DNA of 64,000 nt from Heptranchias perlo (GCF_035084215.1 NC_090332.1:1922001-1986000), one strand, 5' to 3'; counted from the stretch's first letter, positions 12,601 to 64,000 are shown. Program-made: numbers and translations. The notes: generated by a model not told the origin, from the sequence alone.

Positions 12601-14207
12601 TTGGAGTACTGTGTACAGTTCTGGTCACCCTATTATAGAAAGGATATTATTAAACTAGAAAGAGTGCAGAAAAGATTTACTAGGATGCTACCGGGACTTG
12701 ATGGTTTGACTTATAGGGAGAGGTTAGACAGACTGGGACTTTTTTCCCTGGAGAGTAGGAGGTTTAGGGGTGATCTTATAGAAGTCTATAAAATAATGAG
12801 GAGCATAGATAAGGTAGATAGTCAAAATCTTTTCCCAAAGGTAGGGGAGTCTATAACGCGAGGGCATAGATTTAAGGTGAGAGGGGAGAGATACAAAAGA
12901 GTCCAGAGGGGCAATTTTTTCACTCAAAGGGTGGTGAGTGTCTGGAACGAGCTGCCAGAGGCAGTAGTAGAGGCGGGTACAATTTTGTCTTTTAAAAAGC
13001 ATTTGGACAGTTACATGGGTAAGATGGGTATAGAGGGATATGGGCCAAGTGCAGGAAATTGGGACTAGCTTAGTGGTATAAACTGGGCGACATGGACGTG
13101 TTGGGCCGAAGGGCCTGTTTCCATGTTGTAACTTCTATGATTCTATGATTCTAGTAGCATGGATACAGAATTGGCTAAGTAACAGGAAACAGAGAGTAGT
13201 GGTGAATGGTTGTTTTTCGGACTGGAGGGAGGTGTACAGTGGTATTCCCCAGGGGTCAGTGCTGGGACCACTGCTTTTCTTGATATATATTAATGACTTG
13301 GACTTGGGTGTACAGGGCACAATTTCCAAATTTGCAGATGACACAAAACTTGGAAGTGTAGTGAACAGTGAGAACGATAGTGATGGACTTCAAGAGGATA
13401 TCGAGAGGCTGGTGGAATGGGCGGACACGTGGCAGAATGGTCGGAAGAACGAGGAGAGGCAATGTAAACTAAAGGGCAGAATTCTAAGAGGGGTACAGGA
13501 ACAGAGAGATCTGGGGGTATATGAGCACAAATCATTGAAGGTGGCAGGGCAGGTTGAGAAAGTGGTTAATAAAGCATACGGGATCCTGGGCTTTATAAAT
13601 AGAGGCATAGAGTACAAGAGTATGGAAGTCATGATGAACCTTTGTAAAACACTGATTTGGCCACTGCTGGAGTATTGTGTCCAATTCTGGGCACCGCACT
13701 TTAGGAAGGATGTGAAGGCCTTAGAGAGGGTGCAGAAGATTTACTGGAATGATTCCAGGGATGAGGAGCTTTAGTTCCGTGGATAGACTGGAGAAGCTGG
13801 GGTTGTTGTCCTTGGAACAGAGAAGGTTGAAAGGAGATTTGATCGGGGTATTCAAAATCATGAAGGGTCTCGACAGAGTAGATAGAGATAAACTCTTCCC
13901 ATTGGTGGAAGGGTCAAGAACCAGAGGACATAGTTTCAAGGTGATTGGCAAAAGAACCAAAGGTGACTTGAGGAAAACTTTTTTACACAGCGAGTGGTTA
14001 GGATCTGGAATGCACTGCCCGAGGGGGTGGTGGAGGCAGATTCAATCATGGCCTTCAAAAGGGAACTGGAAAAAAATTTGCAGGGCTGCTGGGAAAGGGC
14101 GGGGGAGTGGGACTAGCTGGATTGCTTTCGCATAGAGCCGGCGCAGCCTCGATGGGCCAAATGGCCTCTTTTCATGCTGTAACCTTTCTATGATTGTATT
14201 ATTCTAT
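9625..14207 (+). mobile_element. Decayed CR1 LINE (APE + RT fragments, 3' tail) with an internal duplication of the RT segment, interrupted by a younger CR1 at 11493-13152
   Basis: YRPP, GDFN, SDH, NYRPVSLTS, PQGSVLGP and FADDTK motifs spread over frameshifted ORFs; tail ...TTCTATGATTGTATT; sequence resumes at 13153 where it was interrupted. Confidence 0.9.
11493..13152 (+). mobile_element. 5'-truncated CR1 LINE with open RT domain (ORF 11692-13068), nested in an older CR1
   Basis: 458-aa RT ORF (GVPQGSVLGPLLF, SKFADDTK); 3' (TTCTATGA)n tail ending ~13152. Confidence 0.93.
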
Positions 14208-15074: not shown

Positions 15075-17085
15075 TAGGAGTGCAGACAGAGAAAGGGACT
15101 GTGGAATGAAAGAGACTGGGCAGAGAGAGAGAGACTGGGACGAGAGAGAGAGTCTGTGGGCAGAGAGAGGGACTGTGGGCAGAGAGAGAGGGTCTGTGGG
15201 CAGAGAGAGAGAGACTGTGGGCGGAGCGAGGGAATGTGGGCAGAGAGAGAGAGACTGTGGGCAGAGAGAGAGACTGTGGAAGAGAGAGAGGGACTGTGGG
15301 CAGAGAGAGAGACTGTGGGCAGAGAGAGAGACTGTGGAAGAGAGAGAGGGACTGTGGGCAGAGAGAGGGACTGTGGGCAGAGAGAGAGACTGTGGGCAGA
15401 GCGAGGGAATGTGGGCAGAGAGAGAGAGACTGTGGGCAGAGAGAGAGACTGTGGGCAGAGAGAGAGGGACTGTGGGCAGAGAGAGGGACTGTGGGCAGAG
15501 AGAGAGAGACTGTGGGCAGAGAGAGAGACTGTGGGCAGAGCGAGGGAATGTGGGCAGAGAGAGAGAGACTGTGGGCAGAGAGAGAGACTGTGGGCAGAGA
15601 GAGAGGGACTGTGGGCAGAGAGAGGGACTGTGGGCAGAGAGAGAGGGACTGTGGGCAGAGAGAGAGACTGTGGGCAGAGAGAGAGACTGTGGGCAGAGAG
15701 AGAGACTGTGGGCGGAGCGAGGGAATGTGGGCAGAGAGAGAGAGACTGTGGGCAGAGAGAGGGACTGTGGAAGAGAGAGAGGGACTGTGGGCAGAGAGAG
15801 AGACTGTGGGCGGAGCGAGGGAATGTGGGCAGAGAGAGAGAGACTGTGGGCAGAGAGAGAGGGACTGTGGGCAGAGAGAGAGGGACTGTGGGCAGAGAGA
15901 GGGACTGTGGGCAGAGAGAGAGAGACTGTGGGCAGAGAGAGGGACTGTGGGCAGAGAGAGGGACTGTGGGCAGAGAGAGAGAGACTGTGGGCAGAGAGAG
16001 AGACTGTGGGCAGAGAGAGAGAGACTGTGGGCAGAGAGAGAGGGACTGTGGGCAGAGAGAGAGGGACTGTGGGCAGAGAGAGGGACTGTGGGCAGAGAGA
16101 GAGACTGTGGGCAGAGAGAGAGGGACTGTGGGCAGAGAGAGAGACTGTGGGCAGAGAGAGAGGGACTGTGGGCAGAGAGAGAGAGACTGTGGGCAGAGAG
16201 AGAGGGACTGTGGGCAGAGAGAGGGACTGTGGGCAGAGAGAGAGAGACTGTGGGCAGAGAGAGAGGGACTGTGGGCAGAGAGAGGGACTGTGGGCAGAGA
16301 GAGAGACTGTGGGCAGAGAGAGAGGGACTGTGGGCAGAGAGAGGGACTGTGGGCAGAGAGAGAGAGACTGTGGGCAGAGAGAGAGGGACTGTGGGCAGAG
16401 AGAGGGACTGTGGGTGGAGAGAGAGACTGTGGGCAGAGAGAGAGAGACTGTGGGCAGAGAGAGGGACTGTGGGCAGAGAGAGGGACTGTGGGTGGAGAGA
16501 GAGACTGTGGGCAGAGAGAGGGACTGTGGGCAGAGAGAGGGACTGTGGGTGGAGAGAGAGACTGTGGGCAGAGCGAGGGAATGTGGGCAGAGAGAGGGAA
16601 TGTGGGCAGAGAGACAGAGAGAGACTGTGGACAGGGAGAGGGACTGTGGGCAGAGAGAGAGACTGTGGGCGGAGCGAGGGAATGTGGGCAGAGAGAGAGA
16701 GACTGTGGGCAGAGAGAGGGACTGTGGGTGGAGAGAGAGACTGTGGGCAGAGAGAGGGAGACTGGGAGGAAAGAGAGAGACTGTGGACAGAGAGAGGGAG
16801 ACTGGGAGGAGAGAGAGAATGTGGGCAGAGAGAGAGACTGGGCAGAGAGAGAGAGACTGTAGACAGAGAGAGAGACTGTAGACAGAGAGAGAGACTGTGG
16901 GCAGAGAAACCGTGTACAGAGAGTGTGTACAGAGAGCGTGTGTACAGAGAGAGCGTATACTGAGAGAGCGTGTGCAGAGAGAGCATGTACAGAGAGCGTG
17001 TGCAGAGAGAGCGTGTACAGAGAGCGTGTACAGAGAGAGCGTGTACAGAGAGCGTGTGCAGAGAGAGCGTGTACAGAGAGAGTAG
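15075..17085. repeat. GA-rich ~19-21-bp minisatellite (GACTGTGGGCAGAGAGAGA[GG])n grading into (GTGTACAGAGAGC)n
   Basis: Direct periodicity with variable GA dinucleotide number. Confidence 0.95.
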
Positions 17086-17119: not shown

Positions 17120-17600
17120 ACTCTGCTGCCAGTATCGTAACCCGCACCAAGTCCCGTTCACCCATCATCTTTGTGCTCGCTGACCTACATTGGCTCCTGA
17201 TCCAGGAACAACTCGATTTTAAAATTTTCATCCTTGTTTTCAAATCTCTCCATGGCTTCGCCCCTCCCTATCTCTGTAATCTCCGACAACCTTCCGAGAT
17301 CTCTGCGCTCCTCCAATTCTGGCCTCTTGCGCATCCACCATTTTCATCACTCCACCATTGGCGGCCGTGCCTTCAGCAGTCTGGGCCCCTAAGCCCTGGA
17401 TTTCCCTCCCTCAACCTCTCCGCCTCTCTCTCCCCCTTTAAGATACTTCTTAAAACTTACTTCTTTGACCAAACTTTTGGTCACCTGTCCTAATATCTCC
17501 TTTTGTGGCTCTTGACAAATTTTGTTTGATAACGCTGCTGGGAAGTGCCTGGGGCATTTTACTACGTTAAAGGCACTGTATAAATGCAAGTAGTTATTGC
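17120..17600 (+). mobile_element. L2-type LINE 3' end remnant
   Basis: LADLHWLLIQEQLDFKIFILVFKSLHGFAPPYL and a ...AAAGGCACTGTATAAATGCAAG tail. Confidence 0.75.
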
Positions 17601-17603
17601 TTT

Positions 17604-17725
17604 GTTACTGGACTAATAATCCAGAGAACGTGAATTCAAATCCCACCATGGGCAGTTTGAGAATTTGAATTCAATTTAAAAATCTGGTATCAGTAAAAGT
17701 GACCATGAGCTGTCGGATTGTCGTT
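17604..17725 (+). mobile_element. Fragment of the tRNA-derived head shared with 38498-38903 and 42700-46012
   Basis: GTTACTGGACTAATAATCCAGAG...TTCAAATCCCACCATGG...TATCAGTAA...CCATGA...GGATTGTCG aligns to 42722-42880. Confidence 0.65.
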
Positions 17726-27137: not shown

Positions 27138-29686
27138 CAAACAGTGTGAGGGGCACAGAGGGTGCAAAATTCTTGATCGGTGTCCAGGAGAACTTTTTTA
27201 GCCAGTACATGACAAGCCCAACAAGAGGGGATGCAATTCTAGATTTAGTCCTGGGAAATGAAGATGGGCAAGTGGGTGAAGTGACAGTGGGTGACCATAT
27301 TGGGGATAGTGACCACAATTCAGTTAGTTTTAGCATTATTATGGAAAAGGACAGTTAAATCAGGAGTAAACGTTTTAAGTTGGGGGAAGGCAAATTTTGC
27401 AGAACGAAGAGGTGATTTGGCAGAAGTGGACTGGACACAATTATTTGAGGAGAAATCAGTGGCAAGCCAGTGGGAGGCAATAAAAAGTGAAACTCTACGG
27501 GTACAATGCAGACACGTCCCCTCAAAGAAAAAGGGTGGCACTGCCAAATTTAGAGCCCCCTGGTTGTCCAGAAGTATACGGGGCAAGATAAAGCAGAAAA
27601 AGGAAGCTTATGACTGTCACAGAAAACTAAATACTGCAGAATGCCTAGAGGAGTATAGAAAGTACAGGGATGACATAAAAAAGGAAAGCAAAGAGAGGGC
27701 ATGAAAAAATATTAGCCAGTAAGATTAAAGAAAACCCAAAGATGTTTTATCAGTACATCAAGAACAGGAGGATAGCTAAGGAAAAGGTGGGACCTATCAG
27801 GGATGATAAGGGTAACTTGTGTGTAGAAGCAGAGGATGTGGGTAGGGTTTTAAATGAATATTTTGTCTCCGTATTCACAAAGGAAAGGGATGATCCGGAC
27901 ATAGTAGTTAAAGAGGAGAGGTGTGAAATATTGGATAAGGTAAACATAACGAGAGAGGAAGTACTAGAGGGACTGGAATCCTTGAAAGTTGATAAGTCAC
28001 CAGGGCCGGATGGATTGTTTCCTAGGCTATTGAAGGAAGCCAGGGAGGAAATAGCGGATGCTCTGAGGATCATTTTCCAATCCTCACTAGATACAGGGGA
28101 GGTACCGGAGGACTGGAAGACTGCAAACATAGTACCATTGTTTAAAAAGGGTACAAGGGAAAGGCCGAACAATTATAGGCCGGTCAGTCTTACCTCGGTG
28201 GTGGGCAAATTATTAGAATCAATACTGAGAGATAGGATAAACTGTCACTTGGAAAGGCATGGTTTAATCAGGGATAGTCAGCATGGATTTATTCAGGGAA
28301 GGTCATGCCTTATAAATCTGATTGAATTCTTTGAGGAAGTGACAAGGAGGATTGATGAGGGTAGTGCAGTGGATGTTGTCTACATGGATTTTAGTAAGGC
28401 ATTTGACAAGGTCCCACATGGCACACTGGTCAGAAAGGTAAAAGCCCATGGGATACAGGGAAATGTGGCAAATTGGATCCAAAATTGGCTCAGTAACAGA
28501 AAACAAAGGGTAAAAGTCAATGGATGTCTTTGTAAATGGAAATCTGTTTCCAATGGTGTGCCACAGGGCTCAGTGTTGGGTCCCTTGCTGTTTGTGGTAC
28601 ATATTAATGATTTGGACTGGAATGTAGGGGGCATGATTGGAAAATTTGCAGACGACACAAAAATTGGCCGTGTAGTTGATAGTGAAGAGGATAGCTGTAG
28701 ACTCCAAGAAGATATCAATGGGTTGGTGGAGTGGGCGGAAAAGTGGCAAATGGAGTTCAACCCGGAGAAGTGTGAGGTAATGCACTTAGGGAGGGCAAAC
28801 AGTAAAAGGGAATACACAGTAAACGGGAATATATTGAGAAGGGTAGAGGAAGTGAGAGACCTTGGAGTGCATGTGCACAGGTCCCTGAAGGTGGCAGTAC
28901 AGGTAGATAAGGTTGTGAAGAAGGCATACGGAATGCTCTCCGTTATTAGCCGAGGCATAGAATACAAAAGCAGGGATGTAATGATGGAACTGTATAAAAC
29001 GCTGGTAAGGCCACAGCTGGAGTATTGTGCGCAGTTCTGGTCACCACATTACAGGAAGGACGTAATTGCTCTGGAGAGAGTGCAGAGAAGATTTACAAGA
29101 ATATTGCCAGAGCTTGAAAATTGCAGCTACAAGGAGAGATTGGATAGGCTGGGGTTGTTTTCCTTGGAGCAGAGGAGGCTGAGGGGTGACTTGATTGAGG
29201 TGTACAAAATTATGAGGGACCCAGATAGAGAATTGCAGCTACGAGATTGGATAGGCTGGGATTGTTTTCCTTGGAGCAGAGGAGGCTGAGGGTTGACTTG
29301 ATTGAGGTGTACAAAATTATGAGGGGCCCAGATAGAATAGACAGGAAGTATCTGTTTCCCCTAGCGGAGAGTTCAAGAACTAGAGGACATAGATTTAAGC
29401 TGATTGGTGGAAGGATTAGAGGGGACATGAGGAAAAGCTTTTTTACCCAGAGGGTGGTGGGTGTATGGAATTCGCTGCCCGAATTGGTGGTTGAGGCAGG
29501 GATACTCAACTCTTTTAAAAAGTACCTGGACCTGCACCTAAAGTGCTGTAAGCTGCAGGGCGACGGACTGGGTGCTGAAAGGTGGGATTAGAATGGGCAC
29601 CCGGTTGTTCTTCGAACCGGTGCGGACACGATGGGCCGAATGGCCCCCTTCTGTGCTGTATCTTTTCTATGGTTCTAGGGTTCTAA
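27138..29686 (+). mobile_element. 5'-truncated CR1 LINE (RT ORF 27742-29289) with a ~110-bp internal tandem duplication near 29120-29335
   Basis: APE C-terminus and RT motifs; TTCTATGG-type tail; GTTT repeated at 27134-37 and 29687-90. Confidence 0.92.
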
Positions 29687-31505
29687 GTTTGCTTTCAGTG
29701 ACTGGCGTACAAGGACACCCAAGTCCCTTTGTACATCAACATTTCCCAATCTATCACCATTTAAATATTACTCTGCCTTTCTGTTTTTCCTTCTGAAGTG
29801 GATAACTTCACTTTTATCCACATTGTACTGCATCTGCCATGTATTTGCCCACTCACTCACTTATCTAAATCGCCTTGAAGCCGCTTTACATCGTCCTCAC
29901 AACTTACGATCCCACCTAGTTTTGTGTCTCAGCAAACTTGGAAATATTACATTTGATTCCCTCATCCAAATTATTGATATATATTGTGAATAGCTGGGGC
30001 CCAAGTACTGATCCCTGTGGTGCCCCACTCGTCACTGCCTGCCACCCGAAAAAGACCCATTTATCCCTACTATCTGTTAACCAATTTTCAAACCATGCCA
30101 GTATATTACTGCCAATCCCATGTGCTTTAATTTTGCACACTAACCTCTTATGTGGGACTTTATCAAAGGCCTTCTGAAAATCCAAATAAACCACATCCAA
30201 TGGTTCTCCCTTATCTATTCTACCAGTTACATCCTCAAAAAACTCCAGTAGGTTTGTCAAACATGATTTCCCTTTCATAAATCCATGTTGACTTTGTCTA
30301 ATCCTGTCGATATTTTCTAAATGTCCTGTTATCACATCCTTTATAATAGATTCTAGCATTTTCCCTACTACTGATGTTGGGCTAACCGATCTGTCGTTCC
30401 CTGTTTTCTCTCTTCCTCCTTTTTTAAATAGTGGGTTTACATTTGCCACCCTCCAATCTGCAGGAATTGTTCCATAATCTATAGAATTTTGGAAGATGAC
30501 AACTAATGCATCCACTATTTCCATAGCTACCTCTTTTAGTACTCTAGAATGCAGATTATCAGGTCCTGGGGATTTATTGGCTTTCAGTCCCATTAATTTC
30601 TCCAGCACTATTTTTTTACTAATACTAATTTCCTTTAATTCCTCCTTCTCACTAGTCCCTTGGTTCCCTAGCATTTCTGGGAAGTTATTTGTGTCCTTTT
30701 CCGTGAAGACAGAACCAAAGTATTTGTTTAATTGCTCTGCCATTTCATTGTTCCCCATTATAAATTCTCCCATTTCTGACTGTAAGGACCTACATTTGTC
30801 TTCACTAATCTTTTTCTTTTTACGTACTTGTAGAAGCTTTTACAGTCCACTTTTATGTTCCTTGCAAGTTTACTCTCGTACTCTATTTTTCCCCTCTTAA
30901 TTAATCTCATGGTCCTTTCTTGCTGAATTCTAAACTGCTCCCAATCCTCAGGCTTGCTACTTTTTCTGGCAACTTTATATGACTCCACTTTGGATCTAAT
31001 ACTATCCTTAATTTATTTTGTTAGCCATGGTTGGGTCACTTTTCTTTTTGTGTTTTTGCACCAGAAACGAATGTATAATTGTTGCAATTCATGCATTCGT
31101 TCCTTAAATGTTAGCCATTGCCTATCCACCGTCATGCCTTTTAATGAAGCTTCCCAATCTATCATAGCCAACTCACTCCTCATACCTTTGTAGTTTCCTT
31201 TGCTTAGATTTAGGACTCTAGTTTCGGATTGGACTGCTTCACTTTCCATCTTAATGAAGAATTCTATCATGTTATGGTCACTCTTCCCTAAAGGACCCCA
31301 CACAACAATATTATTAATTAATCCCTTCTCATTACACAATACCCAATCTAGGATAGCCTGTTCCCTGCTTGGCTCCTCAATGTACTGGTCTAAAAAACCA
31401 TCTCGTACACAGTCCAGGAATTCATCCTCTGCAGTATTATTGCTAATTTGGTTTGGCCAGTCTATTTGTAGATTAAAGTCACCCATGATTACTGTAGTAC
31501 CGTTG

Positions 31506-35463: not shown

Positions 35464-35655
35464 NNNNNNNNNNNNNNNNNNNNNNNNNNNNNNNNNNNNN
35501 NNNNNNNNNNNNNNNNNNNNNNNNNNNNNNNNNNNNNNNNNNNNNNNNNNNNNNNNNNNNNNNNNNNNNNNNNNNNNNNNNNNNNNNNNNNNNNNNNNNN
35601 NNNNNNNNNNNNNNNNNNNNNNNNNNNNNNNNNNNNNNNNNNNNNNNNNNNNNNN
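35464..35655. other. Assembly gap (run of N) in intron 6
   Basis: N run; followed by a CR1-like 3' tail (TTCGTATG repeats). Confidence 0.99.
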
Positions 35656-37709: not shown

Positions 37710-40050
37710 CGGAATGTAGAATTATCTACTTTGGACCCAAGAAAGATAAGTCAGAGTATTTTCTAAATGGTGAGAAACTAGAAACTGTAGAGGAGCAAAG
37801 AGAATGAGAGTCCAAGTTCACAAATCATTTAAAGCTACTGGACAGATGCAAAAAGCAATTGGAAAGGTTAATGGAATGTTGGCCTTTATCTCAAGGGGGC
37901 TGGAATACAAAGGGGGGAAAATGATGCTTCAGTTGTATAGAGCCTTGGTTATATCCCATCTGGAGCCATTCAGCCCCTCAAGCCTGTTCTGCCATTCTAA
38001 TAGATCATGGCTGATCTGTACCTTAACTCCATTTGCCCGCCTTTGATCCATATCCCTCGATACCCTTACCCAACAAAAATCATCGATTTCAGTCTTAACA
38101 ATTTCAATTGACCCCCAGCATCCACAGCCTTTTGGGGGAGAGAGTTCCAGATTTCCACTACTGATTATGTGAAAATGTGCCTCCTGATTTCACACCTAAA
38201 CGGCCTGGCTCTAATTTTAAGATTATGCCCCCTTGTTCTGGATTCCCCCTCCAGAGGAAAAAGTATCTACCTACCCTATCGAATCCCTTTATCATTTTAA
38301 ACACCTCAACCATTGAAAGTCAAGCCAATATAAGCCAAGTTTATGCAACCTGTCTTCATAATTTAACCCTTTACAACACTTCAAAAGAACTTCATTGGCT
38401 CTAAAGCACTTGGGAACATCCTGAGGTGGAAAGGCACTATATAAATGCAAGTCTTTTGCTTTTTTTAAGCCCTGATATCATTCTGTTTAATCTGCACTTT
38501 TTTTTATTTGTTCATGTGATGTGGGCATCACTGGCAAGGCCAGCATTTATTGCCCATCCCTAATAGCCCTTGAGAAGCCACCTTTTTGACAACTGAGTGG
38601 TTTGCCAGGCCATTTCAGAGGGCAATTAAGAATCAATCACATTGCTGTGGGTCTGGAGTCACATATAGGCCAGACCGGGTAAAGATGGCAGGTTTCCTTC
38701 CCTGAAGGATATTAGTGAACCAGATGGGTTTTTATGACAAGTAGTTTCATGGCCACCATTACTGATACTAGTTTTTTTTAAATTCCAGATTTTGTTTAAT
38801 TAATTGAATTTAAATTCCCCAGCTGCCATGGTGGGATTTAAACTCCTGACTCCAGATTATTAGTGCAGGCCTCTGGATTACATAACCACTATGCTACTGT
38901 ACCACCTCTAAGGTCAATCTATCCTTCCTGAGATGCGATGCCCAAAACTGAACGCAGTATCTCCAGATGGGGGTCTGACCAAGGTTCTGTACAACTGAAG
39001 CATCACTTCCTCACTTTTGAATTCCAGCCCCCTTGAGATAAAGGCCAACATCCCATCAGCCTTTTTGTTACATTTTGTGCCTGTGCACTAGCCTTTAGTG
39101 ATTTGTGTACCTGGACAGATAAATCCCTTCGCTGCTTCACAGCTCTCAGTCTCTCACCATTTAGAAAATATTCCAATTTCTCTTTCTTGGGTCCAAAGTG
39201 GATGATCTCACACTTTCCCCACATTGAACTCCATGTGCCAGAGTTTTGCCCATTGATTTAGTCTGCTGATGCAACTTTCTGCTCCCATCTACACAACTTA
39301 CTGTGCCTCCTAACTTATTGTCATCTGAAAACCTGGACATACAACTCTCTATTCCTTCATTGCTGGTGAACATCACTTATCACACTTTGTCAATCAGAGT
39401 ACATTCCCTTTATCCCTACTCTCCATCTCCTACCTCCCAACCAATTAACAACCCATGTCACAAAGTTATCTCCAATTCTGTGCGCTTTAATTTTTGCTAA
39501 TAATCTCTTGTGCAGAACCTTACATACTTCCTGGAAGTCCATGTAGACAACATACATAGACACTCCCCTATCCACCCTGCTAGTGACCGCCTCAAAAAAT
39601 TCAACTAAATTAGTCAGACATGACCTACCCTTCACAAATCCATACTGACTCTTTGATCAGCTCATAGAGTAGACAGGGCTGATGGCCGGCGCGGACACGA
39701 TGGGCCGAAGGGCCTCTATCCGTGCTGTATAACTCTATGACTCTATGACTCTATATTTGTCCAAGTGCTCAGTCACTCTGTCCCCAATGATAGATTCCAG
39801 TAACTTCCCCAAAACTGATGTTAAACTGACAGGTCTGTAGTTTCCTGATTTCTCCCTCCCTCCTCAAATAATTTTCAATTTGTCAATCCAAAAGATACAA
39901 TTAATGAATCTAGGGAATTCTGGAAAATTATGACTAATGCATCTCCAATTTCCTCACCAATTTCTTGTAATATCCTGGAGTGGAAACCATCAGTTCCTGG
40001 AGATCTGTCTGTCTTTAGTCCCATTATTTTCTCCATTACCATTTTTAAGC
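37710..40050. mobile_element. Cluster of old CR1 fragments (+ at ~37710-37965; - at ~37965-38370 and ~38905-40050)
   Basis: Degenerate RT/C-terminal motifs (KCEIIHFG, FSDDNKLGG, GRSCLTNLVEFF). Confidence 0.75.
38498..38903 (-). mobile_element. tRNA-headed SINE made of the 5' ~325 bp and 3' ~100 bp of the LINE at 42700-46012
   Basis: A box TAGCATAGTGG; body aligns to 42700-43025, then jumps to 45908-46012; poly(A) tail. Confidence 0.88.
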
Positions 40051-41404: not shown

Positions 41405-44400
41405 CAACACACTGAGAGCCACACTGTCACACTCCCTTACACACTGAGAGCCACACTGTCACACTCCTTTACACACTGAGATCCACACTGTCACACTCCC
41501 TTACACACTGAGAGCCACACTGTCACAATCCCTTACACACTGAGAGCCACACTGTCACACTCCCTTACACACTGAGAGCCACACTGTCACAATCCCTTAC
41601 ACACTGAGAGCCACACTGTCACACTCCCTTACACACTGAGAGCCACACTGTCACAATCCCTTACACACTGAGATCCACACTGTCACACTCCTTTAAACAT
41701 GAGATCCACATTGTCACACTCCCTTACACACTGAGATCCACATTGTCACACTCTGCTTTACACACTGAGATCCACACTGTCACACTCCTTTACACACTGA
41801 GATCTACTCTGTCACAAATCTTCACACACAGATCCACACTGTCACACTCCCTTACACACTGAGATCCACACTAACACACTCCTTTACACACTGAGATCCA
41901 TATTGTCACACTCCCTTGCACACTGAGATCCACACTGTCACACTCCTTTACACACTGAGATCCACACTGTCACACTCCTTTACACACTGAGATCCACATT
42001 GTCACACTCCTTTAAACATGAGATCCACATTGTCACACTCCTTTACACACTGAGATCCACACTGTCACACTCCTTTACACACTGAGATCCACATTGTCAC
42101 ACTCCTTTACACACTGAGATCCACATTGTCACACTCTGCTTTACACACTGAGATCCACACGGTCACACTCCTTTACACTCTGAGATGCCCACTGTCACAC
42201 TCCTTTACACACTGAGATCCACATGGTCACACTCTGCTTTACACACTGAGATTCACACTGTCACACTCCTTTACACATTGAATTCCACACTGTCACACTG
42301 CTTTACACACTAAGATCCACACGGTCACACTCCTTTACACACTGAGATGCACACTGTCACACTCCCTTACACACTGAGATCCACAATGTCACACTCCTTT
42401 ACACACTGAATTCCACACCGTCACACTCCTTTTCACACTAAGATCCACACTGTCACACTCCTTTACACACAGATTCACACTGTCACACTCCTTTACACAC
42501 TGAGATCCAGTACTGTCACACTCCTTTACACACTGAGATGCACACTGTCACAATCCTATACACACTGAGATCCAGTACTGTCACACTCCTGTACACACTG
42601 AGATTCACATTGTCACACTCCTTTACACACTGAGATTCACATTGTCACACTCCTTTACACACTGAGATCCAGTACTGTCACACTCCTTTACACACTAAGG
42701 GTACGGTAGCATATTGGTTATGTTACTGGACTAGTAATCCAGAGTCATGAGTTCAAATCCCGCCACGGCAGCTGGTGAATTTAAATTCAATTAATTAATT
42801 AAATTCAATTAATTAAATAAAAATCTGGAATTAAAATACCAGTATCAGTAATGATGGCCATGAAACTACCGGATTGTCGTAAAAACCCATCTGGTTCACT
42901 AATGTTCTTGAGTGAAGGAAACCTGCCGTCCTTACCCGGTCTGGCCGATATGTGACTCCAGACCCAGAGCAATGTGGTTGATTCTTATTTGCCCTCTGAA
43001 ATGGCCTAGCAAGCCACTCAGTTGTAAAATCTCGCTACAAAAAGTCATAATAAGAATAAAACCGGACGGACCACCCGGCATCGGACCACGAGGCACCGGA
43101 CACGACAACGGCAAAACACCAAGCCCAGTCGACCCTGCAAGGTCCTCCTCACTAACATCTGGGGACTTGTGCTAAAATTGGGAGAGCTGTCCCACAGACT
43201 AGTCAAGCAACAGCCTGACATAGCCATACTGACAGAATCATACCTTTCAGCCAACGTCCCAGACTCTCCCATCACCATCCCTGGGTATGTCCTGTCCCAC
43301 CGGCAGGACAGACCCACCAGAGGTGGCGGTACAGTGATATACAGTCAGGAGGGAGTAGCCCTGGGAGTCCTCAACATTGACTCTGGACCCCATGAAATTT
43401 CATGGCATCAGGTCAAACATGGGCAAGGAAACCTCCTGCTGATTACCATCTACCGCCTCCCTCAGCTGATGAATCAGTCCTCCTCCATGTTGAGCACCAC
43501 TTGGAGGAAGCAGTGAGGGTAGCAAGGGCACAAAATGTACTCTGGGTGGGGGACTTCAATGTCCATCACCAAGAGTGGCTCGGTAGCACCACTACTGACC
43601 GAGCTGGCCGAGTCCTGAAGGACATAGCTGCTAGACTGGGCCTGCGGCAGGTGGTGAGCGAACCGACACGAGGGAAAAACTTACTTGACCTTGTCCTCAC
43701 CAATCTACCTGTCGCAAATGCATCTGTCCATGACAGTATTGGTAGGAGTGACCACTGCACAGTCCTCGTGGAGATGAAGTCCCGTCTTCGCACTGAGGAC
43801 ACCATCCAACGTGTTGTGTGGCACTACCACCGTGCTAAATGGGATAGATTCAGAACAGATCTCGCAGCTCGAAACTGGGCATCCATGAGGCGCTGTGGGC
43901 CATCAGCAGCAGCAGAATTGTATTCCACTACAATCTGTAACCTCATGGCCCGGCATATTCCTCACTCTACCATTACCAACAAGCCAGGGGATCAACCCTG
44001 GTTCAATGAGGAGTGTAGAAGAGCATGCCAGGAGCAGCACCAGTCGTACCTAAAAATGAGGTGCCAACCTGGTGAAGCTACAACTCAGGACTACATACAT
44101 GCTAAACAGCGGAAGCAACATGCTATAGACAGAGCTAAGCAATTCCACAACCAACGGATCAGATCAAAGCTCTGCAGTCCTGCCACATCCAGTCGTGAAT
44201 GGTGCTGGACAATTAAACAACTAACGGGAGGAGGAGGCTCTGCAAACATCCCCATCCTCAATGATGGCGGAGTCCAGCACGTGAGTGCAAAAGACAAGGC
44301 TGAAACGTTTGCAACCATCTTCAGACAGAAGTGCCGAGTGGATGATCCATCTCGGCCTCCTCCCGATATCCCCACCATCACAGAAGCCAGTCTTCGGCCA

Positions 44401-47310
44401 ATTCGATTCACTCCACGTGTTATCAAGAAACGGCTGAGTGCACTGGATACAGCAAAGGCTATGGGCCCTGACAACATCCCGGCTGTAGTGCTGAAGACTT
44501 GTGCTCCAGAACTAGCTGCGCCTCTAGCCAAGCTGTTCCAGTACAGCTACAACACTGGCATCTACCCGACAATGTGGAAAATTGCCCAGGTATGTTCTGT
44601 CCACAAAAAGCAGGACAAATCCAATCCGACCAATTACCGTCCCATCAGTCTACTCTCAATCATCAGCAAAGTGATGGAAGGTGTCGTCGACAGTGCTATC
44701 AGGCGGCACTTACTCACCAATAACCTGCTCACCGATGCTCAGTTTGGGTTCCGCCAGGACCACTCGGCTCCAGACCTCATTACAGCGTTGGTCCAAATAT
44801 GGACAAAAGAGCTGAATTCCAGAGGTGAGGTGAGAGTGACTGCCCTTGACATCAAGGCAGCATTTGACCGAGTGTGGCACCAAGGAGCCCTAGTAAAATT
44901 GAAGTCAATGGGAATCAGGGGGAAAACTCTCCAGTGGCTGGAGTCATACCTAGCACAAAGGAAGATGGTAGTGGTTGTTGGAGGCCAATCATCTCAGCCC
45001 CAGGACATTGCTGCAGGAGTTCCTCAGGGCAGTGTCCTCGGCCCAACCATCTTCAGCTGCTTCATCAATGACCTTCCCTCCATCATAAGGTCAGAAATGG
45101 GGATGTTCGCTGATGACTGCATAGTGTTCAGTTCCATTCGCAACCCCTCAAATAATGAAGCAGTCCGAGCCCGCATGCAGCAAGACCTGGACAACATCCA
45201 GGCTTGGGCTCATAAGTGGCAAGAAACATTCGCGCCAGATAAGTGCCAGGCAATGACCATCTCCAACAAGAGAGAGTCTAACCACCTCCCCCTGACATTC
45301 AACGGCATTACCATCACTGAATCCCCAACCATCAACATTCTGGGGGCCACCATTGACCAGAAACTTAACTGGACCAGCCATATAAATACTGTGGCTACGA
45401 GAGCAGGTCAGAGGCTGGGTATTCTGCGGCGAGTGACTCACCTCCTGACTCCCCAAAGCCTTTCCACCATCTACAAGGCACAAGTCAGGAGTGTGATGGA
45501 ATACTCTCCACTTGCTTGGATGAGTGCAGCTCCAACAACACTCAAGAAGCTCGACACCATCCAAGATAAAGCAACCCGCTTGATTGGCACCCCATCCACC
45601 ACCCTAAACATTCACTCCCTTCACCACTGGCGCACTGTGGCTACAGTGTGTACCATCCACAGGATGCACTGCAGCAACTCGCCAAGGCTTCTTCGACAGC
45701 ACCTCCCAAACCCGCGACCTCCACCACCTGGAAGGACAAGAGCAGCAGGCACATGGGAACAACACCACCTGCACGTTCCCCTCCAAGTCACACACCATCC
45801 CGACTTGGAAATATATCGCCGTTCCTTCATTGTCGCTGGGTCAAAATCCTGGAACTCCCTTCCTAACAGCACTGTGGGAGAACCGTCACCACACGGACTG
45901 CAGCGGTTCAAGAAGGCGGCTCAGCACCACCTTCTCGAGGGCAATTAGGGATGGGCAATAAATGCCGGCCTCGCCAGCGACGCCCACATCCCGTGAACGA
46001 ATAAAAAAAAAAACACTGAGATCCACACTTTCACACTCCTTTACACACTGAGATCCAGTACTGTCACACTCCTTTACACTCTGAGATTCACAGTGTCACA
46101 TTCCTTTACACACTGAGATCCACACTTTCACACTCCTTTCCACACTGAGATCCACACTTTCACACTCCTTTACACACTGAGATCCAGTACTGTCACACTC
46201 CTTTACACTCTGAGATTCACAGTGTCACATTCCTTTACACACTGAGATCCACACTTTCACACTCCTTTCCACACTGAGATCCACACTTTCACACTCCTTT
46301 ACACACTGAGATCCAGTACTGTCACACTCCTTTACACACTGAGATCCACACGGTCACACTGCTTTACACATTGAATTCCACACTGTCACACTGCTTTGCA
46401 CACTGAGATCCACACGGTCACACTCCTTTACACACTGAGATTCACACTGTCACAATCCTTTACACACTGAATTCCACACTGTCACACTCCCTTACACACT
46501 GAGATCCACATGGTCACATTCCTTAACACACTGAGATCCACACTGTCACACTCCCTTACACACTGAGATCCACACTAACACACTCCTTTACACACTGAGA
46601 TCCACACTGTCACACTCCTTTACACACTGAGATCCACACTGTCACACTCCTTTAAACATGAGATCCACATTGTCACACTCCTTTACACACTGAGATCCAC
46701 ATTGTCACACTCCTTTACACACTGAGATCCACACTGTCACACTTCTTTACACACTGAGATCCACACTGTCACACTCCTTTACACACTGAGATCCACATTG
46801 TCACACTCCTTTACACACTGAGATCCAGTACTGTCACACTCCTTTACACACTGAGATCCAGTACTGTCACACTCCTTTACACACTGAGATCCACATTGTC
46901 ACATTCCTTTACACACTGAGGTCCAGTACTGTCACACTCCTTTACACACTGAGATTCACATTGTCACATTCCTTTACACACTGAGATCCATTACTGTCAC
47001 ACTCCTTTACACACTGAGATCCAGTACTGTCACACTCCTTTACACACTGAGATCCACACTGTCACACTCCTTTACACACTGAGATCCACATTGTCACATT
47101 CCTTTACACACTGAGATCCAGTACTGTCACACTCCTTTACACACTGAGATCCAGTACTGTCACATTCCTTTACACACTGAGATCCATTACTGTCACACTC
47201 CTTTGCACACTGAGATTCACATTGTCACATTCCTTTGCACACTGAGATCCACACTTTCACACTCCTTTACACACTGAGATCCACACTGTCACATTCCTTT
47301 ACACACTAAT
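41405..47310. repeat. 32-bp minisatellite (ACACACTGAGATCCACACTGTCACACTCCTTT)n, interrupted by a LINE at 42700-46012
   Basis: Direct periodicity on both sides of the insertion. Confidence 0.96.
42700..46012 (+). mobile_element. CR1/L2-group non-LTR retrotransposon, single APE-RT ORF (one frameshift ~43455), tRNA-derived 5' head, poly(A) tail
   Basis: TNIWGL, ILTESYL, GDFN, SDH, NYRPISLLS, GVPQGSVLGP, MFADD; ORF pieces 43169-43455 and 43455-45948; A/B boxes at 42707-17 and 42751-59. Confidence 0.92.
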
Positions 47311-55696: not shown

Positions 55697-58600
55697 AGCG
55701 GCTACAGGGCATTCTCAAGGGGGAGGGTGAGCAGGCAGAGGTCGTGGTCCACATTGGGACCAACGACATAGGTAGGAAGGGAGATGAGGTCCTGCATCAA
55801 GAATTTAGGGAGCTAGGTAGCAGATTAAAGAGCAGGACCTCAAAGGTTGTAATCTCTGGATTACTCCCAGTGCCACGGGCTAGTGAGTATAGAAATAGGA
55901 GGATAGAACAGATGAATGCGTGGCTAAAGAGTTGGTGCAGGAGGGAGGGTTTCAGTTTCCTGGATCACTGGGCCTGCTTCTGGGGAAGGTGGGACTTGTA
56001 CAAGTCGGACGGGTTGCACCTGAACCAGAGCGGGACAAATATCCTTGCGGGGAGGTTTGCTAGCACTGTTGGGGGGGGTTTAAACTAACTTGGCAGGGGG
56101 ATGGGATACAGAGTGGAGCTACAATAGGGGGTGATGTGCAGCCAAATATAGAGAAAAAAACAAGTCAGCTTGGAAGACAGGGCAAATATGTGAGGGCAAG
56201 GCTGGATGGCATCTATTTTAATGCAAGGAGTCTTGCGAATAAGGTGGATGAACTGAAGGTGTTGATAAACACATGGGAGTATGATATTGTTGCTGTCACA
56301 GAGACATGGTTGAGGGAGGGGCAAGACTGGCAGCTCAATATTCCGGGGTACAGAATCTTCAGGCGAGACAGAGGGGGAGGTATAAGAGGAGGGGGGGTCG
56401 CAATATTAATTAAAGAATCAATTACTGCCATAAGGAGGGATGATATATTAGCAGGTTCCTCTAATGAGGCCATATGGGTGGAGCTTAAAAACAAAAAGGG
56501 GGCAAGCACTTTGATGGGAGTGTACTATAGGCCCCCAAACAGTCAGGGGGAGATAGAGGAACAAATATGTAGGCAAATCTCAGAAAATTGTGCAAATAAT
56601 AGGGTAATAATAGTGGGGGATTTCAACTTCCCCAATATTAACTGGGATACTCAGAGTGTAAAAGGCTTAGAGGGTACAAAATTCTTAACGTGCATCCAGG
56701 AGAGCTTTTTGAGCCAGCATGTAGAAAGTCCTACAAGAGAGGGGGTGGTACTGGACCTAATTCTAGGGAATGTGGCCGGCCAAGTGGAAGAAGTGCTAGT
56801 AGGTGAGCACTTTGGTGACAGTGACCATAATTCGGTGAGATTTAAGGTGGTCATGGAAAAGGACAGGGAGGGGCCGGAAATAAAGGTTCTAAATTGGGGG
56901 AAGGCCGATTTTAATAGGATAAGGCAGGATCTGGCCAAAATGGACTGGGATCAGCTGCTTGTAGGAAAATCCGCATCGGAGCAATGGGAGTCTTTCAGAA
57001 GGGAGATTGAGACCATACAATGGCAACATGTTCCCGTAAAGGTCAAGGGTGGTTCCAAGAACTCCAGGGAACCTTGGATGTCAGGGGATATACGAGAATA
57101 GATTAGGAAAAAAAGGAGGGCTTTTGGCCGATACAAAAGGCTAAAGACGGAGGAAGCCCTAGAGGAGTACAAAAAGTGCAGGGGGATACTTAAAAAAGAA
57201 ATTAGGAGATCAAGGAGGGGCCATGAAATAACACTGGCGAGCAAAATAAAGGAAAATCCTAAGATGTTTTATAAGTATATTAAGGGTAAGAGGATAACTA
57301 GGGAAAAAATAGGGCCCATTAGGGACAAAAATGGCAATCTGTGTGTGGAGCCGGCAGATGTAGGAGGGGTTCTAAATGAATTTTTTGCATCTGTTTTCAC
57401 TATGGAGAAGGACGATGTAGACATAGAAATACGGCAGGGGGACTGTGATATACTCGAACATATTAACATCGAGCGGGAGGAGGTATTGGCGGTTTTAGCA
57501 GGCCTAAAAATGGATAAATCCCCAGGCCTGGACGAAATGTATCCCAGGCTACTGTGTGAGGCAAAGGAGGAGATTGCGGGGGCTCTAACACATATATTCA
57601 GAACCTCTCTGGCCACAGGGGATGTGCCAGAGGACTGGAGAACCGCTAATGTAGTACCATTATTCAAGAAGGGGAGTAGGGAAAAACCGGGGAACTACAG
57701 GCCAGTGAGCCTAACATCAGTGGTAGGAAAATTATTGGAAAAAATTCTGGAGGACAAAATTAGTCTCCACTTGGAGAAGCAAGGATTAATCAGGGATAGT
57801 CAACATGGCTTTGTCAAGGGAAGATCATGTCTGACTAATTTGATTGAATTTTTTGAGGGGGTGACTAGGCGTGTGGATGAGGGTAACGCAGTGGATGTGG
57901 TATACATGGATTTCAGTAAGGCCTTCGATAAAGTCCCGCACAGGAGACTGGTCAAGAAGGTACGAGCCCATGGAGTCCAGGGTGCCTTGGCACTTTGGAT
58001 ACAAAACTGGCTTAGTGGCAGAAGGCAGAGGGTGATGGTCGAAGGTTGTTTTTGTGACTGGAAGCCTGTGGCCAGTGGGGTACCACAGGGATCTGTGCTG
58101 GGGCCCTTGCTGTTTGTGGTCTACATTAACGACTTGGATATGAATGTAAAAGGTATGATCAGTAAGTTCGCTGATGATACAAAAATTGGTAGGGTGGTAA
58201 ATAGCGAGGAGGATAGCCTCAGTCTGCAGGACGATATAGATGGGTTGGTCAGATGGGCGGAACAGTGGCAAATGGAATTTAACCCGGAAAAGTGCGAGGT
58301 GATGCACTTTGGAGGGACTAACAAGGCAAGGGAATACACAATGAATGGGAGGACCCTAGGCAAGACAGAGGGTCGGAGGGATCTTGGTGTGCAAGTTCAC
58401 AGATCCCTGAAGGCGGCGGAACAGGTAGATAAGGTGGTAAAGAAGGCATATGGGATACTTGCCTTTATTAGCCGAGGCATAGAATATAAGAGCAAGGAGG
58501 TTATGATGGAGCTGTATAAAACACTGGTTAGGTCACAGCTGGAGTACTGTGTGCAGTTCTGGTCGCCACACTACAGGAAGGATGTGATCGCTTTGGAGAG

Positions 58601-59085
58601 GGTGCAGAGGAGATTCACCAGGATGTTACCAGGGCTGGAGCGCTTCAGCTATGAAGAGAGACTGGGAAGATTGGGTTTGTTTTCCTTGGAGCAGAGGAGG
58701 CTGAGGGGGGACATGATTGAGGTGTACAAAATTATGAGGGGCACAGATAGGATGGATACTAAGGAGCTTTTTCCCTTCGTTGAGGGTTCTATAACAAGGG
58801 GACATAGATTCAAGGTAAAAGGCGGGAGGTTTAGAGGGGATTTGAGAAAGAACTTTTTCACCCAGAGGGTGGTTGGAGTCTGGAACTCACTGTCTGAAAG
58901 GGTTGTGGAGGCAGGAACCCTCACAACATTCAAGAAGCATTTGGATGAGCACTTGAAATGCCATAGCATACAAGGCTACGGACCAAATGCTGGAATATGG
59001 GATTAGAGTAGACAGGGCTGATGGCCTGCGCGGACACGATGGGCCGAAGGGCCTCTATCCGTGCTGTATAACTCTATGACTCTAT
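55697..59085 (+). mobile_element. Young CR1 LINE: 3' part of ORF1 (SGNH/esterase) + ORF2 with a single premature stop (57099-57101); in the last CHRNA2 intron, antisense
   Basis: VHIGTND...DGLHLN esterase; ORFs 56136-57101 and 57264-59006 share one frame; GACGTT TSD at 55691-96 and 59086-91. Confidence 0.96.

Positions 59086-61529: not shown

Positions 61530-64000
<2,471 letters not shown>

Follow-up and report, generated by a model that had tools for sequence, protein, structure and literature searches.

A SINE-headed, Zenon-like LINE inserted as one unit in the Heptranchias perlo genome, and its possible transcription by RNA polymerase III

Related retrotransposons

Zenon-type CR1-group LINEs of elasmobranchs, found in shark-type genomes with a very large CR1-group load, have a single ORF that encodes both an APE endonuclease and the reverse transcriptase (RT). 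As stated in the main text of PMC13343379, they universally lack an ORF1 and, alone among CR1-group elements, end in a poly-A tail. The same text states that the elasmobranch Zenon elements were not deposited in a repeat library; the name "CR1-Zenon like" is used in a whale shark preprint (10.1101/443036). Our 64-kb window, the whole 64,000-nucleotide stretch of H. perlo DNA that was analyzed, contains a 3313-bp retrotransposon at 42700-46012 (+ strand) that consists of a tRNA-like head, a single APE-RT frame and an A-tail. It has the single APE and RT ORF (in two pieces), no ORF1 and a poly-A tail before the target-site duplication (TSD), and is likened to Zenon by these described features. 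The lack of an ORF1, which an earlier note on this DNA had treated as special, is normal for such LINEs (PMC13343379). A 5' tRNA-derived head like the one found here is not described in the main text of that paper, which mentions SINEs once and tRNA not at all. The best database proteins were 34-40% identical to the element's ORF and unnamed; the nearest relative retrieved (L001; 38% amino acid identity) has a single ORF and an A-tail.

Short forms made of the two ends of a long element have precedents. Persaeus, a SIDE (short internally deleted element) of the Zenon LINE in Lepidoptera, consists of the 5' and 3' ends of a long coding element (PMC6740152), as does the SINE at 38498-38903 relative to our unit, and RIME/ingi and other bipartite non-autonomous LINEs follow the same pattern (PMC5786205). 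However, Persaeus is described as lacking a Pol III promoter and as unrelated in sequence to tRNA, 5S RNA and 7SL RNA (PMC6740152), whereas both partners here have a tRNA-derived head. In the survey of PMC5786205, LINE 5' parts in SINE bodies are given for the RTE and Vingi clades only and not for the CR1 group. Among tRNA-derived SINEs with a partner LINE, the HE1 (V-SINE)/HER1 pair from sharks and rays and the dogfish SacSINE1, compared by name from a table in PMC3747384, resemble our locus in their elasmobranch host, in a tRNA-like head that contains an A and a B box, and in a body followed by a LINE-derived tail. Classical SINE/LINE pairs have only the tail in common, the 5' end of the LINE being separate, whereas here the LINE also has the head and body.

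Two further systems offer partial parallels. In U6/L1 chimeric retrocopies, as here, a copy of a Pol III RNA lies 5' of a LINE within one TSD; such chimeras are one-off and not known to propagate, with the LINE part truncated at variable points, whereas the junction of our element appears fixed, a diverged contig having the same one without gaps. R2 elements are co-transcribed with rRNA by Pol I and depend on their insertion site and a ribozyme. They are a precedent for a LINE with a template RNA other than a capped Pol II product and with an unconventional ORF start, although our element brings along a promoter-like head and is inserted at sites that are dispersed. Our literature search found no published tRNA-headed LINE.

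Structure and insertion of the element

The features of the locus are collected in Table 1. The element lies in a 32-bp satellite, the left arm of which spans 41407-42696 and which resumes at 46013; the target duplication is 7-8 bp long, with one mismatch between its copies. One TSD and one tail enclose everything, and no second tail or inner duplication was found within the unit. The interruption of the satellite with a 7-8 bp duplication and an A-tail means that the element moved as one unit; the whole 3.3 kb was inserted in one piece via target-primed reverse transcription.

Table 1. Coordinates of the element, its target site and the short SINE in the window
Feature	Position	Strand	Basis
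Short SINE of the element's family (head, body, tail), lacking the 2.9 kb of LINE	38498-38903	-	alignment
Left TSD copy ACACTAAG, end of left satellite arm	42692-42699	+	sequence, tandem repeat search
tRNA-derived head, Thr-AGU-like anticodon arm	42700-42770	+	sequence; Rfam tRNA match
A box TAGCATATTGG	42707-42717	+	sequence
Anticodon arm CTGGA/CTAGTAA/TCCAG	42726-42742	+	sequence
B box GTTCAAATC	42751-42759	+	sequence
SINE body, common to short SINE; contains 18-bp tandem duplication 42781-42821 (TRF)	42771-43029	+	
Leader, SINE body to endonuclease: A-rich piece 43038-43061 ending GAATAAAA, then CCGGAC-type short repeats	43030-43132	+	
ORF piece 1: N-terminal half of APE endonuclease, frame of 43028, no ATG	43133-43456	+	translation
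Frame break; many other copies differ here by one letter in length	43455-43460	+	frame change, contigs
ORF piece 2: remaining APE, RT, C-terminal region; stop TAG 45946-45948	43459-45948	+	850 stop-free codons
3' tail common with SINE: last ORF codons and 3' UTR	45908-46002	+	alignment to short SINE
A-tail, 10 A	46003-46012	+	sequence
Right TSD copy CACTGAG, satellite resumes	46013-46019	+	sequence, tandem repeat search

The A box, anticodon arm and B box lie where the earlier note had placed them. The A box begins 7 nt past the first base of the element, and the spacing between the starts of the A and B boxes (43-44 nt) is tRNA-like. The Rfam tRNA model matched 42706-42764 with 21.7 bits (E 0.33 in 3.5 kb), short of its gathering score of 29, and ARAGORN found no tRNA in the 64-kb window. 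A true tRNA gene is ruled out by these two results, which mark the head as a degenerate SINE-type tRNA relic. SINE copies located at 38.9 kb and 17.6 kb of the window have the same tRNA-like head. Positions 1-330 of the element aligned with 38903-38585 (- strand) at 81% over 342 columns, and positions 3232-3311 aligned with 38577-38498 (- strand) at 89% over 80 nt, with the alignment reaching 45908. An ordinary SINE therefore corresponds to the first ~330 bp and the last ~80-105 bp of the element, and the SINE/LINE breakpoint falls on the boundary between SINE body and tail. In terms of sequence, these alignments show the element to be a short SINE that encloses 2.9 kb of LINE, the first bases of the two coinciding. 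Like SINE2 elements, our element has a tRNA-related head, in which A and B boxes lie, and a LINE-shared 3' tail, but it is neither short nor non-coding; with 3313 bp and a 958-codon APE-RT frame, it is not classed as a SINE.

The leader may be a remnant of a SINE tail or a LINE 5' UTR. Its motif GAATAAAA occupies 43054-43061; the similarity between the leader and the 3' tail was not significant (178 of 1000 shuffles scored equally well). AATAAA occurs on the sense strand at 42816, 43055, 45957 and 46000, the first three of which are uninformative on the polymerase either way, and mammalian SINEs with AATAAA illustrate that Pol III transcripts can be polyadenylated (e.g. PMC8466645).

The APE-RT frame begins ~433 nt from the 5' end, close to the 450 bp estimated earlier, and is open from 43028. 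As had been claimed, there is no ORF1 (the longest open stretch upstream of the APE is 87 codons, inside the SINE body) and no in-frame ATG ahead of the endonuclease in the window copy, in-frame ATGs further upstream being separated by stops. The N-terminal motif KVLLTNIWGL..GEL of the first ORF piece resembles the start motif of 11 relatives, as judged by eye, this piece lying outside the alignment. Pfam matches were found to Exo_endo_phos_2 (~43486-43764, E 2.3e-11) and RVT_1 (~44608-45351, E 8.6e-38). The stop-free codons on either side of the single frameshift total 958; because of this frameshift, the window copy itself cannot be an intact coding element. The earlier description of a coding retrotransposon thus holds insofar as head, APE-RT frame and tail form one retrotransposed unit, but the window copy is frameshifted, and the missing ATG is a property of that copy only. 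The frameshift, the SINE identity of the ends, the satellite host with its TSD and the satellite nature of other TTTT-free stretches had all been missed in the first reading.

Recurrence in other copies and organisms

Recurrence was assessed with contigs of the runs X1, X5, X15 and X18 (organisms A, B and D), X15 and X18 being putative RNA runs. At least half of the sampled words were contained in 16 of the 21 listed runs, and organisms B-E contained 0.58-0.62 of them. All 30 bins of the element were covered in each of the four runs. The junction bin (43009-43121) showed no hole, its summed contig depth in X1, a measure distinct from copy number, being 2.73M versus 4.04M and 2.09M in its neighbors. 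Among the contigs listed, a single one (X15 record 9) bridged the SINE/LINE junction, running from 42902 to 43074 (174 nt) with 15 differences and no gaps; X5 record 25 covered 43049 to 43186. Twelve contigs of X15 passed out of the element at precisely 42699/42700, where their flanks are unlike. None of the 15 best-supported of 15 + 2152 joints connected the end of the SINE to the LINE at a varying internal point, and among those 15, every joint leaving 42996-43029 landed in the tail (45906-45946). At the level of contigs, these data show that the SINE/LINE junction is also present in diverged copies and in other organisms; the fusion of head and ORF is not unique to this locus, a point on which the earlier note had made its proposal depend. 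The element very probably represents a true, recurrent family that is mobilized as a unit.

The copies vary in the length and sequence of the leader, with loose contig ends at 43086 and 43118. One extra letter behind 43455 was found in 85 contigs of X1, 10 of X5, 4 of X15 and 4 of X18. The coding part of the window copy carries at least 29 private substitutions (9 synonymous and 20 non-synonymous). Differences fixed in organism D numbered 4 synonymous versus 4 non-synonymous, too few to show selection.

T-run depletion and the candidate template RNA

Runs of at least four identical bases on the sense strand of 42700-46012 numbered 0 for T, 19 for A, 10 for C and 6 for G, in agreement with the absence of TTTT and the common AAAA runs noticed by eye; the nearest downstream TTTT is at 47390. 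The expected number of TTTT was 4.5 by mononucleotide shuffles (P(0) = 0.014), 2.5 by dinucleotide shuffles (P(0) = 0.064) and 2.0 by synonymous-codon shuffles (P(0) = 0.10), the last being the composition check that had been proposed. With P values of 0.064 and 0.10 under realistic nulls, zero TTTT in one copy is no more than suggestive, as the earlier note had itself judged from an expectation of about 4. T runs of at least three were depleted, with 8 observed versus 22.6 expected (none of 3000 mononucleotide shuffles was as low) and, in the coding part, 6 versus 13.1 by synonymous shuffles (P = 0.003); such runs of the other bases were at expectation (A, 53 vs 53.0; C, 49 vs 53.9; G, 32 vs 30.6). 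This depletion of runs of at least three is significant, T-specific and sense-strand-specific. The suggested comparison with sister LINEs gave 7-49 TTTT, near the expected counts, in 33 of 33 distant ORFs of at least 800 aa, and the CR1 element at 55697-59085, said to have more than ten TTTT runs, has 13. None of the 40 majority variants listed creates a TTTT. The element is the sole long TTTT-free stretch of the window besides tandem arrays; the other long TTTT-free stretches are plain satellites.

The element has the parts of a type-2 Pol III unit, namely A and B boxes with tRNA-like spacing and start and no internal T4 terminator. Since Pol III does not terminate at T3, the depletion of T3 supports Pol III only indirectly. 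The T-specific, sense-strand depletion of runs fits, but does not prove, the proposed constraint to remain readable by Pol III; for the lack of TTTT in one copy, P is only 0.06-0.10.

Our best explanation, held tentatively, is a recurrent elasmobranch family in which a Zenon-like LINE of the CR1 group, with a single ORF and a poly-A tail, has a SINE head and body at its 5' end and its template RNA made by Pol III. The head and body are best explained as coming from a SINE with the same 3' tail as the LINE, with the window copy slightly decayed. The template RNA would begin at the SINE +1, driven by the internal A/B-box promoter, and Pol III would read through the 3.3 kb, no T4 terminator lying in the unit. 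The family's own RT would then copy this RNA via the shared tail, in cis or in trans. The first composite is likely to have arisen through template switching, probably by extension of LINE cDNA onto SINE RNA, and a SINE-first order is favored rather than proven. That Pol III makes the family's template RNA is quite possible, short of being probable; as a fit and not a proof, it is the best single reading of the element.

Exchange of 5' UTRs is frequent among LINE lineages. The family might accordingly be real and unit-mobilized with a Pol II template, the SINE head and body having been recruited as a 5' UTR whose internal promoter serves Pol II, the tRNA relic a passenger and the poverty in T runs a compositional quirk. 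Internal Pol II promoters are the norm for LINEs (as stated in PMC5786205), the element ends in AATAAA and an A-tail as Zenon LINEs do (in the account of PMC13343379), a 3.3-kb RNA that needs translation suits Pol II better, and TTTT = 0 alone has P = 0.10. We consider this rather unlikely, because Pol II would have to start at the exact base of the Pol III SINE start (the flanks diverge at 42699/42700, and the 5' end is that of the SINE copy) and because the T- and sense-strand-specific depletion, absent from all 33 sister LINE ORFs, would be left unexplained. Least credible is a local accident, in which a SINE and a 5'-truncated LINE are adjacent or nested at this locus or were joined in assembly. 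Both kinds of element are very abundant (599,161 contigs were placed in X1), but the single TSD and tail without inner copies, the junction in other diverged contigs and organisms, including the bridging contig, and the breakpoint at the SINE body/tail boundary all contradict it.

It is also improbable that no lineage exists and that each composite is a fresh chimera, dead on arrival as in U6/L1, made when a LINE RT jumps from the 5' end of a Pol II LINE RNA onto a Pol III SINE-type RNA. Template switching is the accepted route of SINE part exchange (as presented in PMC5786205 and PMC4824008), the 5' module ends in GAATAAAA like a true 3' end, a single TSD is equally compatible, and headless LINE 5' ends could exist among 5248 loose ends beyond those listed. 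A jump onto the end of a normal SINE RNA should, however, have left a canonical SINE tail core, which the 5' module does not have; a diverged copy has the identical gap-free junction, variable SINE-to-LINE joints are missing from the best 15 of 15 + 2152, and the depletion of T runs in the LINE part would be unexplained. A similarly low probability attaches to a giant SINE, in which a non-autonomous passenger would be transcribed by Pol III, would contain a LINE ORF untranslated from its own RNA and would be mobilized in trans by the enzyme of conventional LINE copies. The window copy has a frameshift and no in-frame ATG, Pol III RNA is uncapped, the window-private changes (9 versus 20) look neutral, and the shared tail makes recognition in trans possible. 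On the other side stand 958 codons free of stops apart from one frameshift, the extra letter of other copies at the frame break and, weakly, the lack of a headless autonomous partner among the loose ends listed.

Within the preferred reading of a Pol III-made composite family, a stronger version is doubtful: an autonomous LINE lineage would have swapped its Pol II 5' end for a tRNA-derived internal Pol III promoter, the terminator-free 3.3-kb unit would be read through, translation of the uncapped RNA would use a non-AUG or an internal start, reverse transcription would occur in cis, and the abundant SINE would be the element's own internal-deletion derivative or its parent. We know of no natural translated Pol III transcripts of 3 kb. 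As Pol III RNA has no cap and the window copy has no in-frame ATG, translation in cis would need an unusual start. If this version is true, the SINE and the LINE would be a short and a long form of a single Pol III retrotransposon.

Insertion site and SINE-like ends

The unit (42700-46012, plus strand; 3313 bp) interrupts a satellite with a 32-bp period at 41407-47307. The left satellite arm ends with ...ACACTAAG, the right arm resumes with CACTGAG immediately after 10 A, and a target duplication of 7-8 nt with 1 mismatch, in the satellite array, surrounds the insert. A duplication of this kind is what one round of target-primed reverse transcription leaves behind, and these borders show that the unit was inserted as one piece. 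We rejected nesting of two insertions and an artificial join in the assembly, because a single target duplication and tail bound the unit and the junction is present in other, diverged contigs. The host satellite (unit ACACACTGAGATCCACACTGTCACACTCCTTT) is rich in C and poor in G (G about 10%); TTT is frequent in it and TTTT nearly absent, and its right arm has a 129-bp higher-order period.

An earlier note had described a tRNA-like head, and all three of its elements were recovered (see the table). The Rfam tRNA model matched 42706-42764 at 21.7 bits, under the gathering score of 29, and ARAGORN detected no tRNA. The head is thus a tRNA relic of the SINE type. Folded as RNA, neither the head nor the tail did better than shuffles (z = -0.8 to -1.0).

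Elements of the tRNA-like head of the unit
Feature	Position	Strand	Basis
A box TAGCATATTGG	42707-17	+	sequence
Anticodon arm, perfect 5-bp stem, loop CTAGTAA	42726-42	+	sequence
B box GTTCAAATC	42751-59	+	sequence

Window self-comparison and alignment revealed that the short SINE at 38498-38903 (minus strand) is 81% identical to the first 330 bp of the unit and, about 8 nt further on, 89% identical to its last 80 bp; by local alignment, the tail match reaches 45908. Because both ends of the unit match the short SINE, the unit is that SINE, in which approximately 2.9 kb of LINE separate body from tail; equivalently, removing the coding part from the unit gives the short SINE. In this copy, the SINE body carries an 18-bp tandem duplication (TTAAATTCAATTAATTAA, 2.3 copies, 42781-42821), the extra 18-bp unit of which is absent from the SINE copy at 38.5 kb. 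Some SINE copies have a repeated piece of the anticodon arm with extra GTAATCCAGAGGC-type letters (38860-38885 in the minus-strand SINE; loose end 42726), together with the "anticodon" AAT instead of AGT; thus, the head has at least two subfamilies.

A third, partial head was located by window self-comparison at 17595-17676, just downstream of a GA-rich 19/40-bp tandem array (TGGGCAGAGAGAGAGAGACTG) that is followed by a 15-bp array (15117-17082 together). Elsewhere, a very regular 36-bp satellite (unit AGGGAATATGGTTCCTATAGGAGATACAGTGTATGT; 247 copies, 94% matches) occupies 1-8906, without TTTT over 1-4364 and without AAAA over 657-5836, and 192 N at 35464-35655 mark an assembly gap or masked sequence.

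Recurrence and origin of the composite

Of the 31-letter words sampled from the unit, 16 of the 21 public runs listed contained 50% or more, and four further organisms contained 0.58-0.62. Contigs were taken from four runs: X1 (organism A, perhaps the source sample), X15 (also organism A), X5 (organism B, only 59 million letters) and X18 (organism D), the RNA label of X15 and X18 being a guess. They covered 30 of 30 bins of the unit in every run, with depth sums, which are not copy numbers, that climbed 7-50-fold from 5' to 3', the gradient that 5' truncation of copies would produce. The bin containing the SINE/LINE junction had a depth of 2.73M in X1, compared with 4.04M and 2.09M in the adjoining bins. 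A 174-nt contig of X15 spans 42902-43074, over the junction, with 15 differences and no gaps, and therefore comes from another copy, diverged from this one but joined at the same point; hence the fusion of head and ORF is not confined to this locus. An X5 contig spans 43049 to 43186. Among the loose ends listed, 12 X15 contigs leave the element exactly at 42699/42700 into unlike flanks, which places the 5' terminus of the family at the first base of the SINE. We consider it very probable that this SINE-headed LINE family is real.

SINE-type joints were also present, running from 42996-43029 to 45906-45946 among the joints listed, the commonest of which (43026 to 45938) occurred in 21 X1 contigs. 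Body and tail of the SINE meet within a few bases of the unit's breakpoint, so the short SINE and the composite are parent and child. In two to three short contigs, the letters between the two sides of a SINE-type joint are ATCTCAC or ATCTTGC, which look like CpG-decayed forms of the letters after 43029. On that reading, a SINE subfamily matches the composite for approximately 12 nt beyond the nominal boundary, which favors a SINE-first origin and suggests, as far as so few contigs allow, that template switching gave the unit the 5' module of a SINE subfamily already in existence. The direction of origin is not proven, since deeper-homology tests were negative: the similarity of the SINE body to the 3' coding end or the 5' part of the LINE was not significant (290 of 300, 253 of 300 and 90 of 100 shuffles reached an equal score). 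The A-rich leader at 43030-43065 was also tried as a degenerate SINE tail and rejected (178 of 1000 shuffles were as good); the MAFFT pairing of the leader with the SINE tail was not counted as evidence.

Coding part and T-run depletion

The frame is open from 43028, with the N-terminus of the endonuclease readable in translation from about 43133; it breaks near 43455-43460 and continues for 850 codons in another frame to a TAG at 45946. Pfam identified Exo_endo_phos_2 (E 2.3e-11) and RVT_1 (E 8.6e-38). The opening motif KVLLTNIWGL..GEL resembles, by eye, the start motif of 11 aligned relatives, in an alignment that included only the second ORF piece of the unit. We found no ORF1 in the unit and no in-frame ATG upstream of the endonuclease in this copy, for which the earlier description of a single APE-RT frame lacking both was correct. 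Many contigs of other copies have one extra letter at the break position (85 of X1, 10 of X5, 4 of X15 and 4 of X18); thus, the frameshift seems to be confined to this copy or a minority of copies. Among the 40 best-supported of 255 differences were 32 at which almost no other contig has the letter of the window, comprising 9 synonymous, 20 non-synonymous and 3 non-coding changes, a pattern that we read as neutral decay after insertion. The same 40 included 4 synonymous and 4 non-synonymous changes specific to organism D, too few to judge selection on the ORF. The leader contains three CCGGAC-type short repeats (43062-43110), and organism B contigs pass from 43086 directly to the letters after 43101, which points to copies that differ in length by 15 nt, in frame.

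The absence of ORF1, named in the earlier note, is normal for the Zenon clade: according to a 2026 survey, Zenon elements occur in sharks and rays, lack ORF1, are the only CR1-group elements with a poly-A tail, and have not been deposited in repeat libraries (PMC13343379). The word "tRNA" never occurs in the main text of that survey. The unit shares the missing ORF1 and the poly-A tail with these elements, and its nearest relative in metagenome contigs, L001, shares the single ORF and the A-tail. From these features we infer that the unit is Zenon-like. Protein homologues of the ORF were 25-44% identical, apart from a public gene-model protein of Heptranchias perlo (P0023; 93% identity over 25% of the query). 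The latter is named an aldo-keto reductase of the sevengill shark, and the matching stretch is probably a piece of LINE that the annotation treats as an exon. No close relative of the ORF was found in metagenome contigs, and no exact motif match turned up in contigs of viral and prokaryote genomes. At least five other LINE fragments lie in the window on both strands (9864-13735, 27197-30719, 39363-39842, 56523-58628 and 62332-63159), with only 20-40% protein identity to the ORF; the sense strands of those measured are G-rich and C-poor (C 13-16%). They belong to older, different CR1/L2-type families.

The sense strand of the unit contains no TTTT, as the earlier note had observed by eye. The expected number was 4.5 by mononucleotide shuffles (P(0) = 0.014), 2.5 by dinucleotide shuffles (P(0) = 0.064) and 2.0 by synonymous-codon shuffles that kept protein and codon usage (P(0) = 0.10), and a second-order estimate gave only 0.6 because TTT itself is rare. 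As a statistic on its own, the absence is therefore weak. The depletion of T runs of at least 3 is stronger: 8 were counted versus 22.6 expected, with none of 3000 shuffles as low, and it is limited to T (A, 53 versus 53.0; C, 49 versus 53.9; G, 32 versus 30.6). Under synonymous shuffling of the coding part, T runs numbered 6 versus 13.1 expected (P = 0.003), and the other bases were at expectation.

As a sister-family control, we used 80 loci of distant relatives (24-41% amino acid identity) from metagenome contigs, 33 of which have an open frame of at least 800 codons. Unlike the unit, all 33 ORFs contained TTTT, from 7 to 49 times and close to the synonymous-shuffle expectation; even the two lowest in T (0.22 and 0.24) had 7. 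In the 3' UTR of L001, runs of T reach a length of 7. On the sense strands of the other LINE fragments measured in the window, TTTT occurs 2.4-4.4 times per kb, and the remaining long TTTT-free stretches of the window are tandem satellites. No tRNA-like head was found in sister loci (ARAGORN, 0 of 36; Rfam at gathering scores, 0 of 20; at E ≤5, 0 of 14), a weak negative because ARAGORN misses the shark head, which in a search that large would score about E 6.

Possible transcription by Pol III

The observations to be explained are a one-piece insertion, a 5' end identical to that of the SINE, a common tail, a recurrent junction and a T-specific depletion of runs. We propose that Pol III would initiate at the +1 of the SINE from the A/B-box promoter, setting the start of the template RNA. 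As no T4 terminator lies inside the unit, Pol III could cross it completely; the first T4 downstream is at 47390. Priming would use the shared tail and A-run, with enzyme acting in cis or provided in trans. An AATAAA lies at 46000, immediately before the A-tail, and mammalian SINE Pol III transcripts with AATAAA can be polyadenylated (PMC8466645, for example). This reading is plausible and open to testing. Its weakest link is the translation of an uncapped RNA without AUG. mRNA made by Pol III is translatable, inefficiently, and R2 elements function from uncapped Pol I co-transcripts.

A headed family driven by Pol II is unlikely, yet the most serious of the alternatives; it would fit the terminal AATAAA and A-tail but leaves the T-specific depletion unexplained. 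That a fresh chimera arises at every insertion is a more doubtful reading, against which stands the shared junction of a diverged copy among the contigs listed. A "giant SINE" mobilized in trans is about equally improbable; it overlaps the Pol III reading. A local accident is very hard to credit beside a fusion that recurs elsewhere. We retain the Pol III reading as our proposal.

In the open literature, to which our search was confined, we found no LINE with a tRNA-derived head and no Pol III-transcribed LINE. Kojima 2018 described LINE 5' parts inside SINE bodies only for RTE and Vingi (PMC5786205), and Persaeus, a deletion derivative of the insect Zenon LINE, differs in being without a Pol III promoter (PMC6740152).

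If true, a coding LINE with the Pol III head of a SINE, mobilized from the first base of the SINE, would blur the divide between the two classes. SINEs are classically Pol III-transcribed non-coding parasites and LINEs their Pol II-transcribed coding hosts, with only the 3' tail in common. The unit would be a natural example of a Pol III transcript that is long and may be translated. It would also provide a direct way in which SINEs could arise by ORF deletion or a SINE could capture a LINE. The T-run signature is a simple genomic prediction that is open to testing, and such a family, if true, could help to account for the very large load of CR1-group elements in shark genomes.
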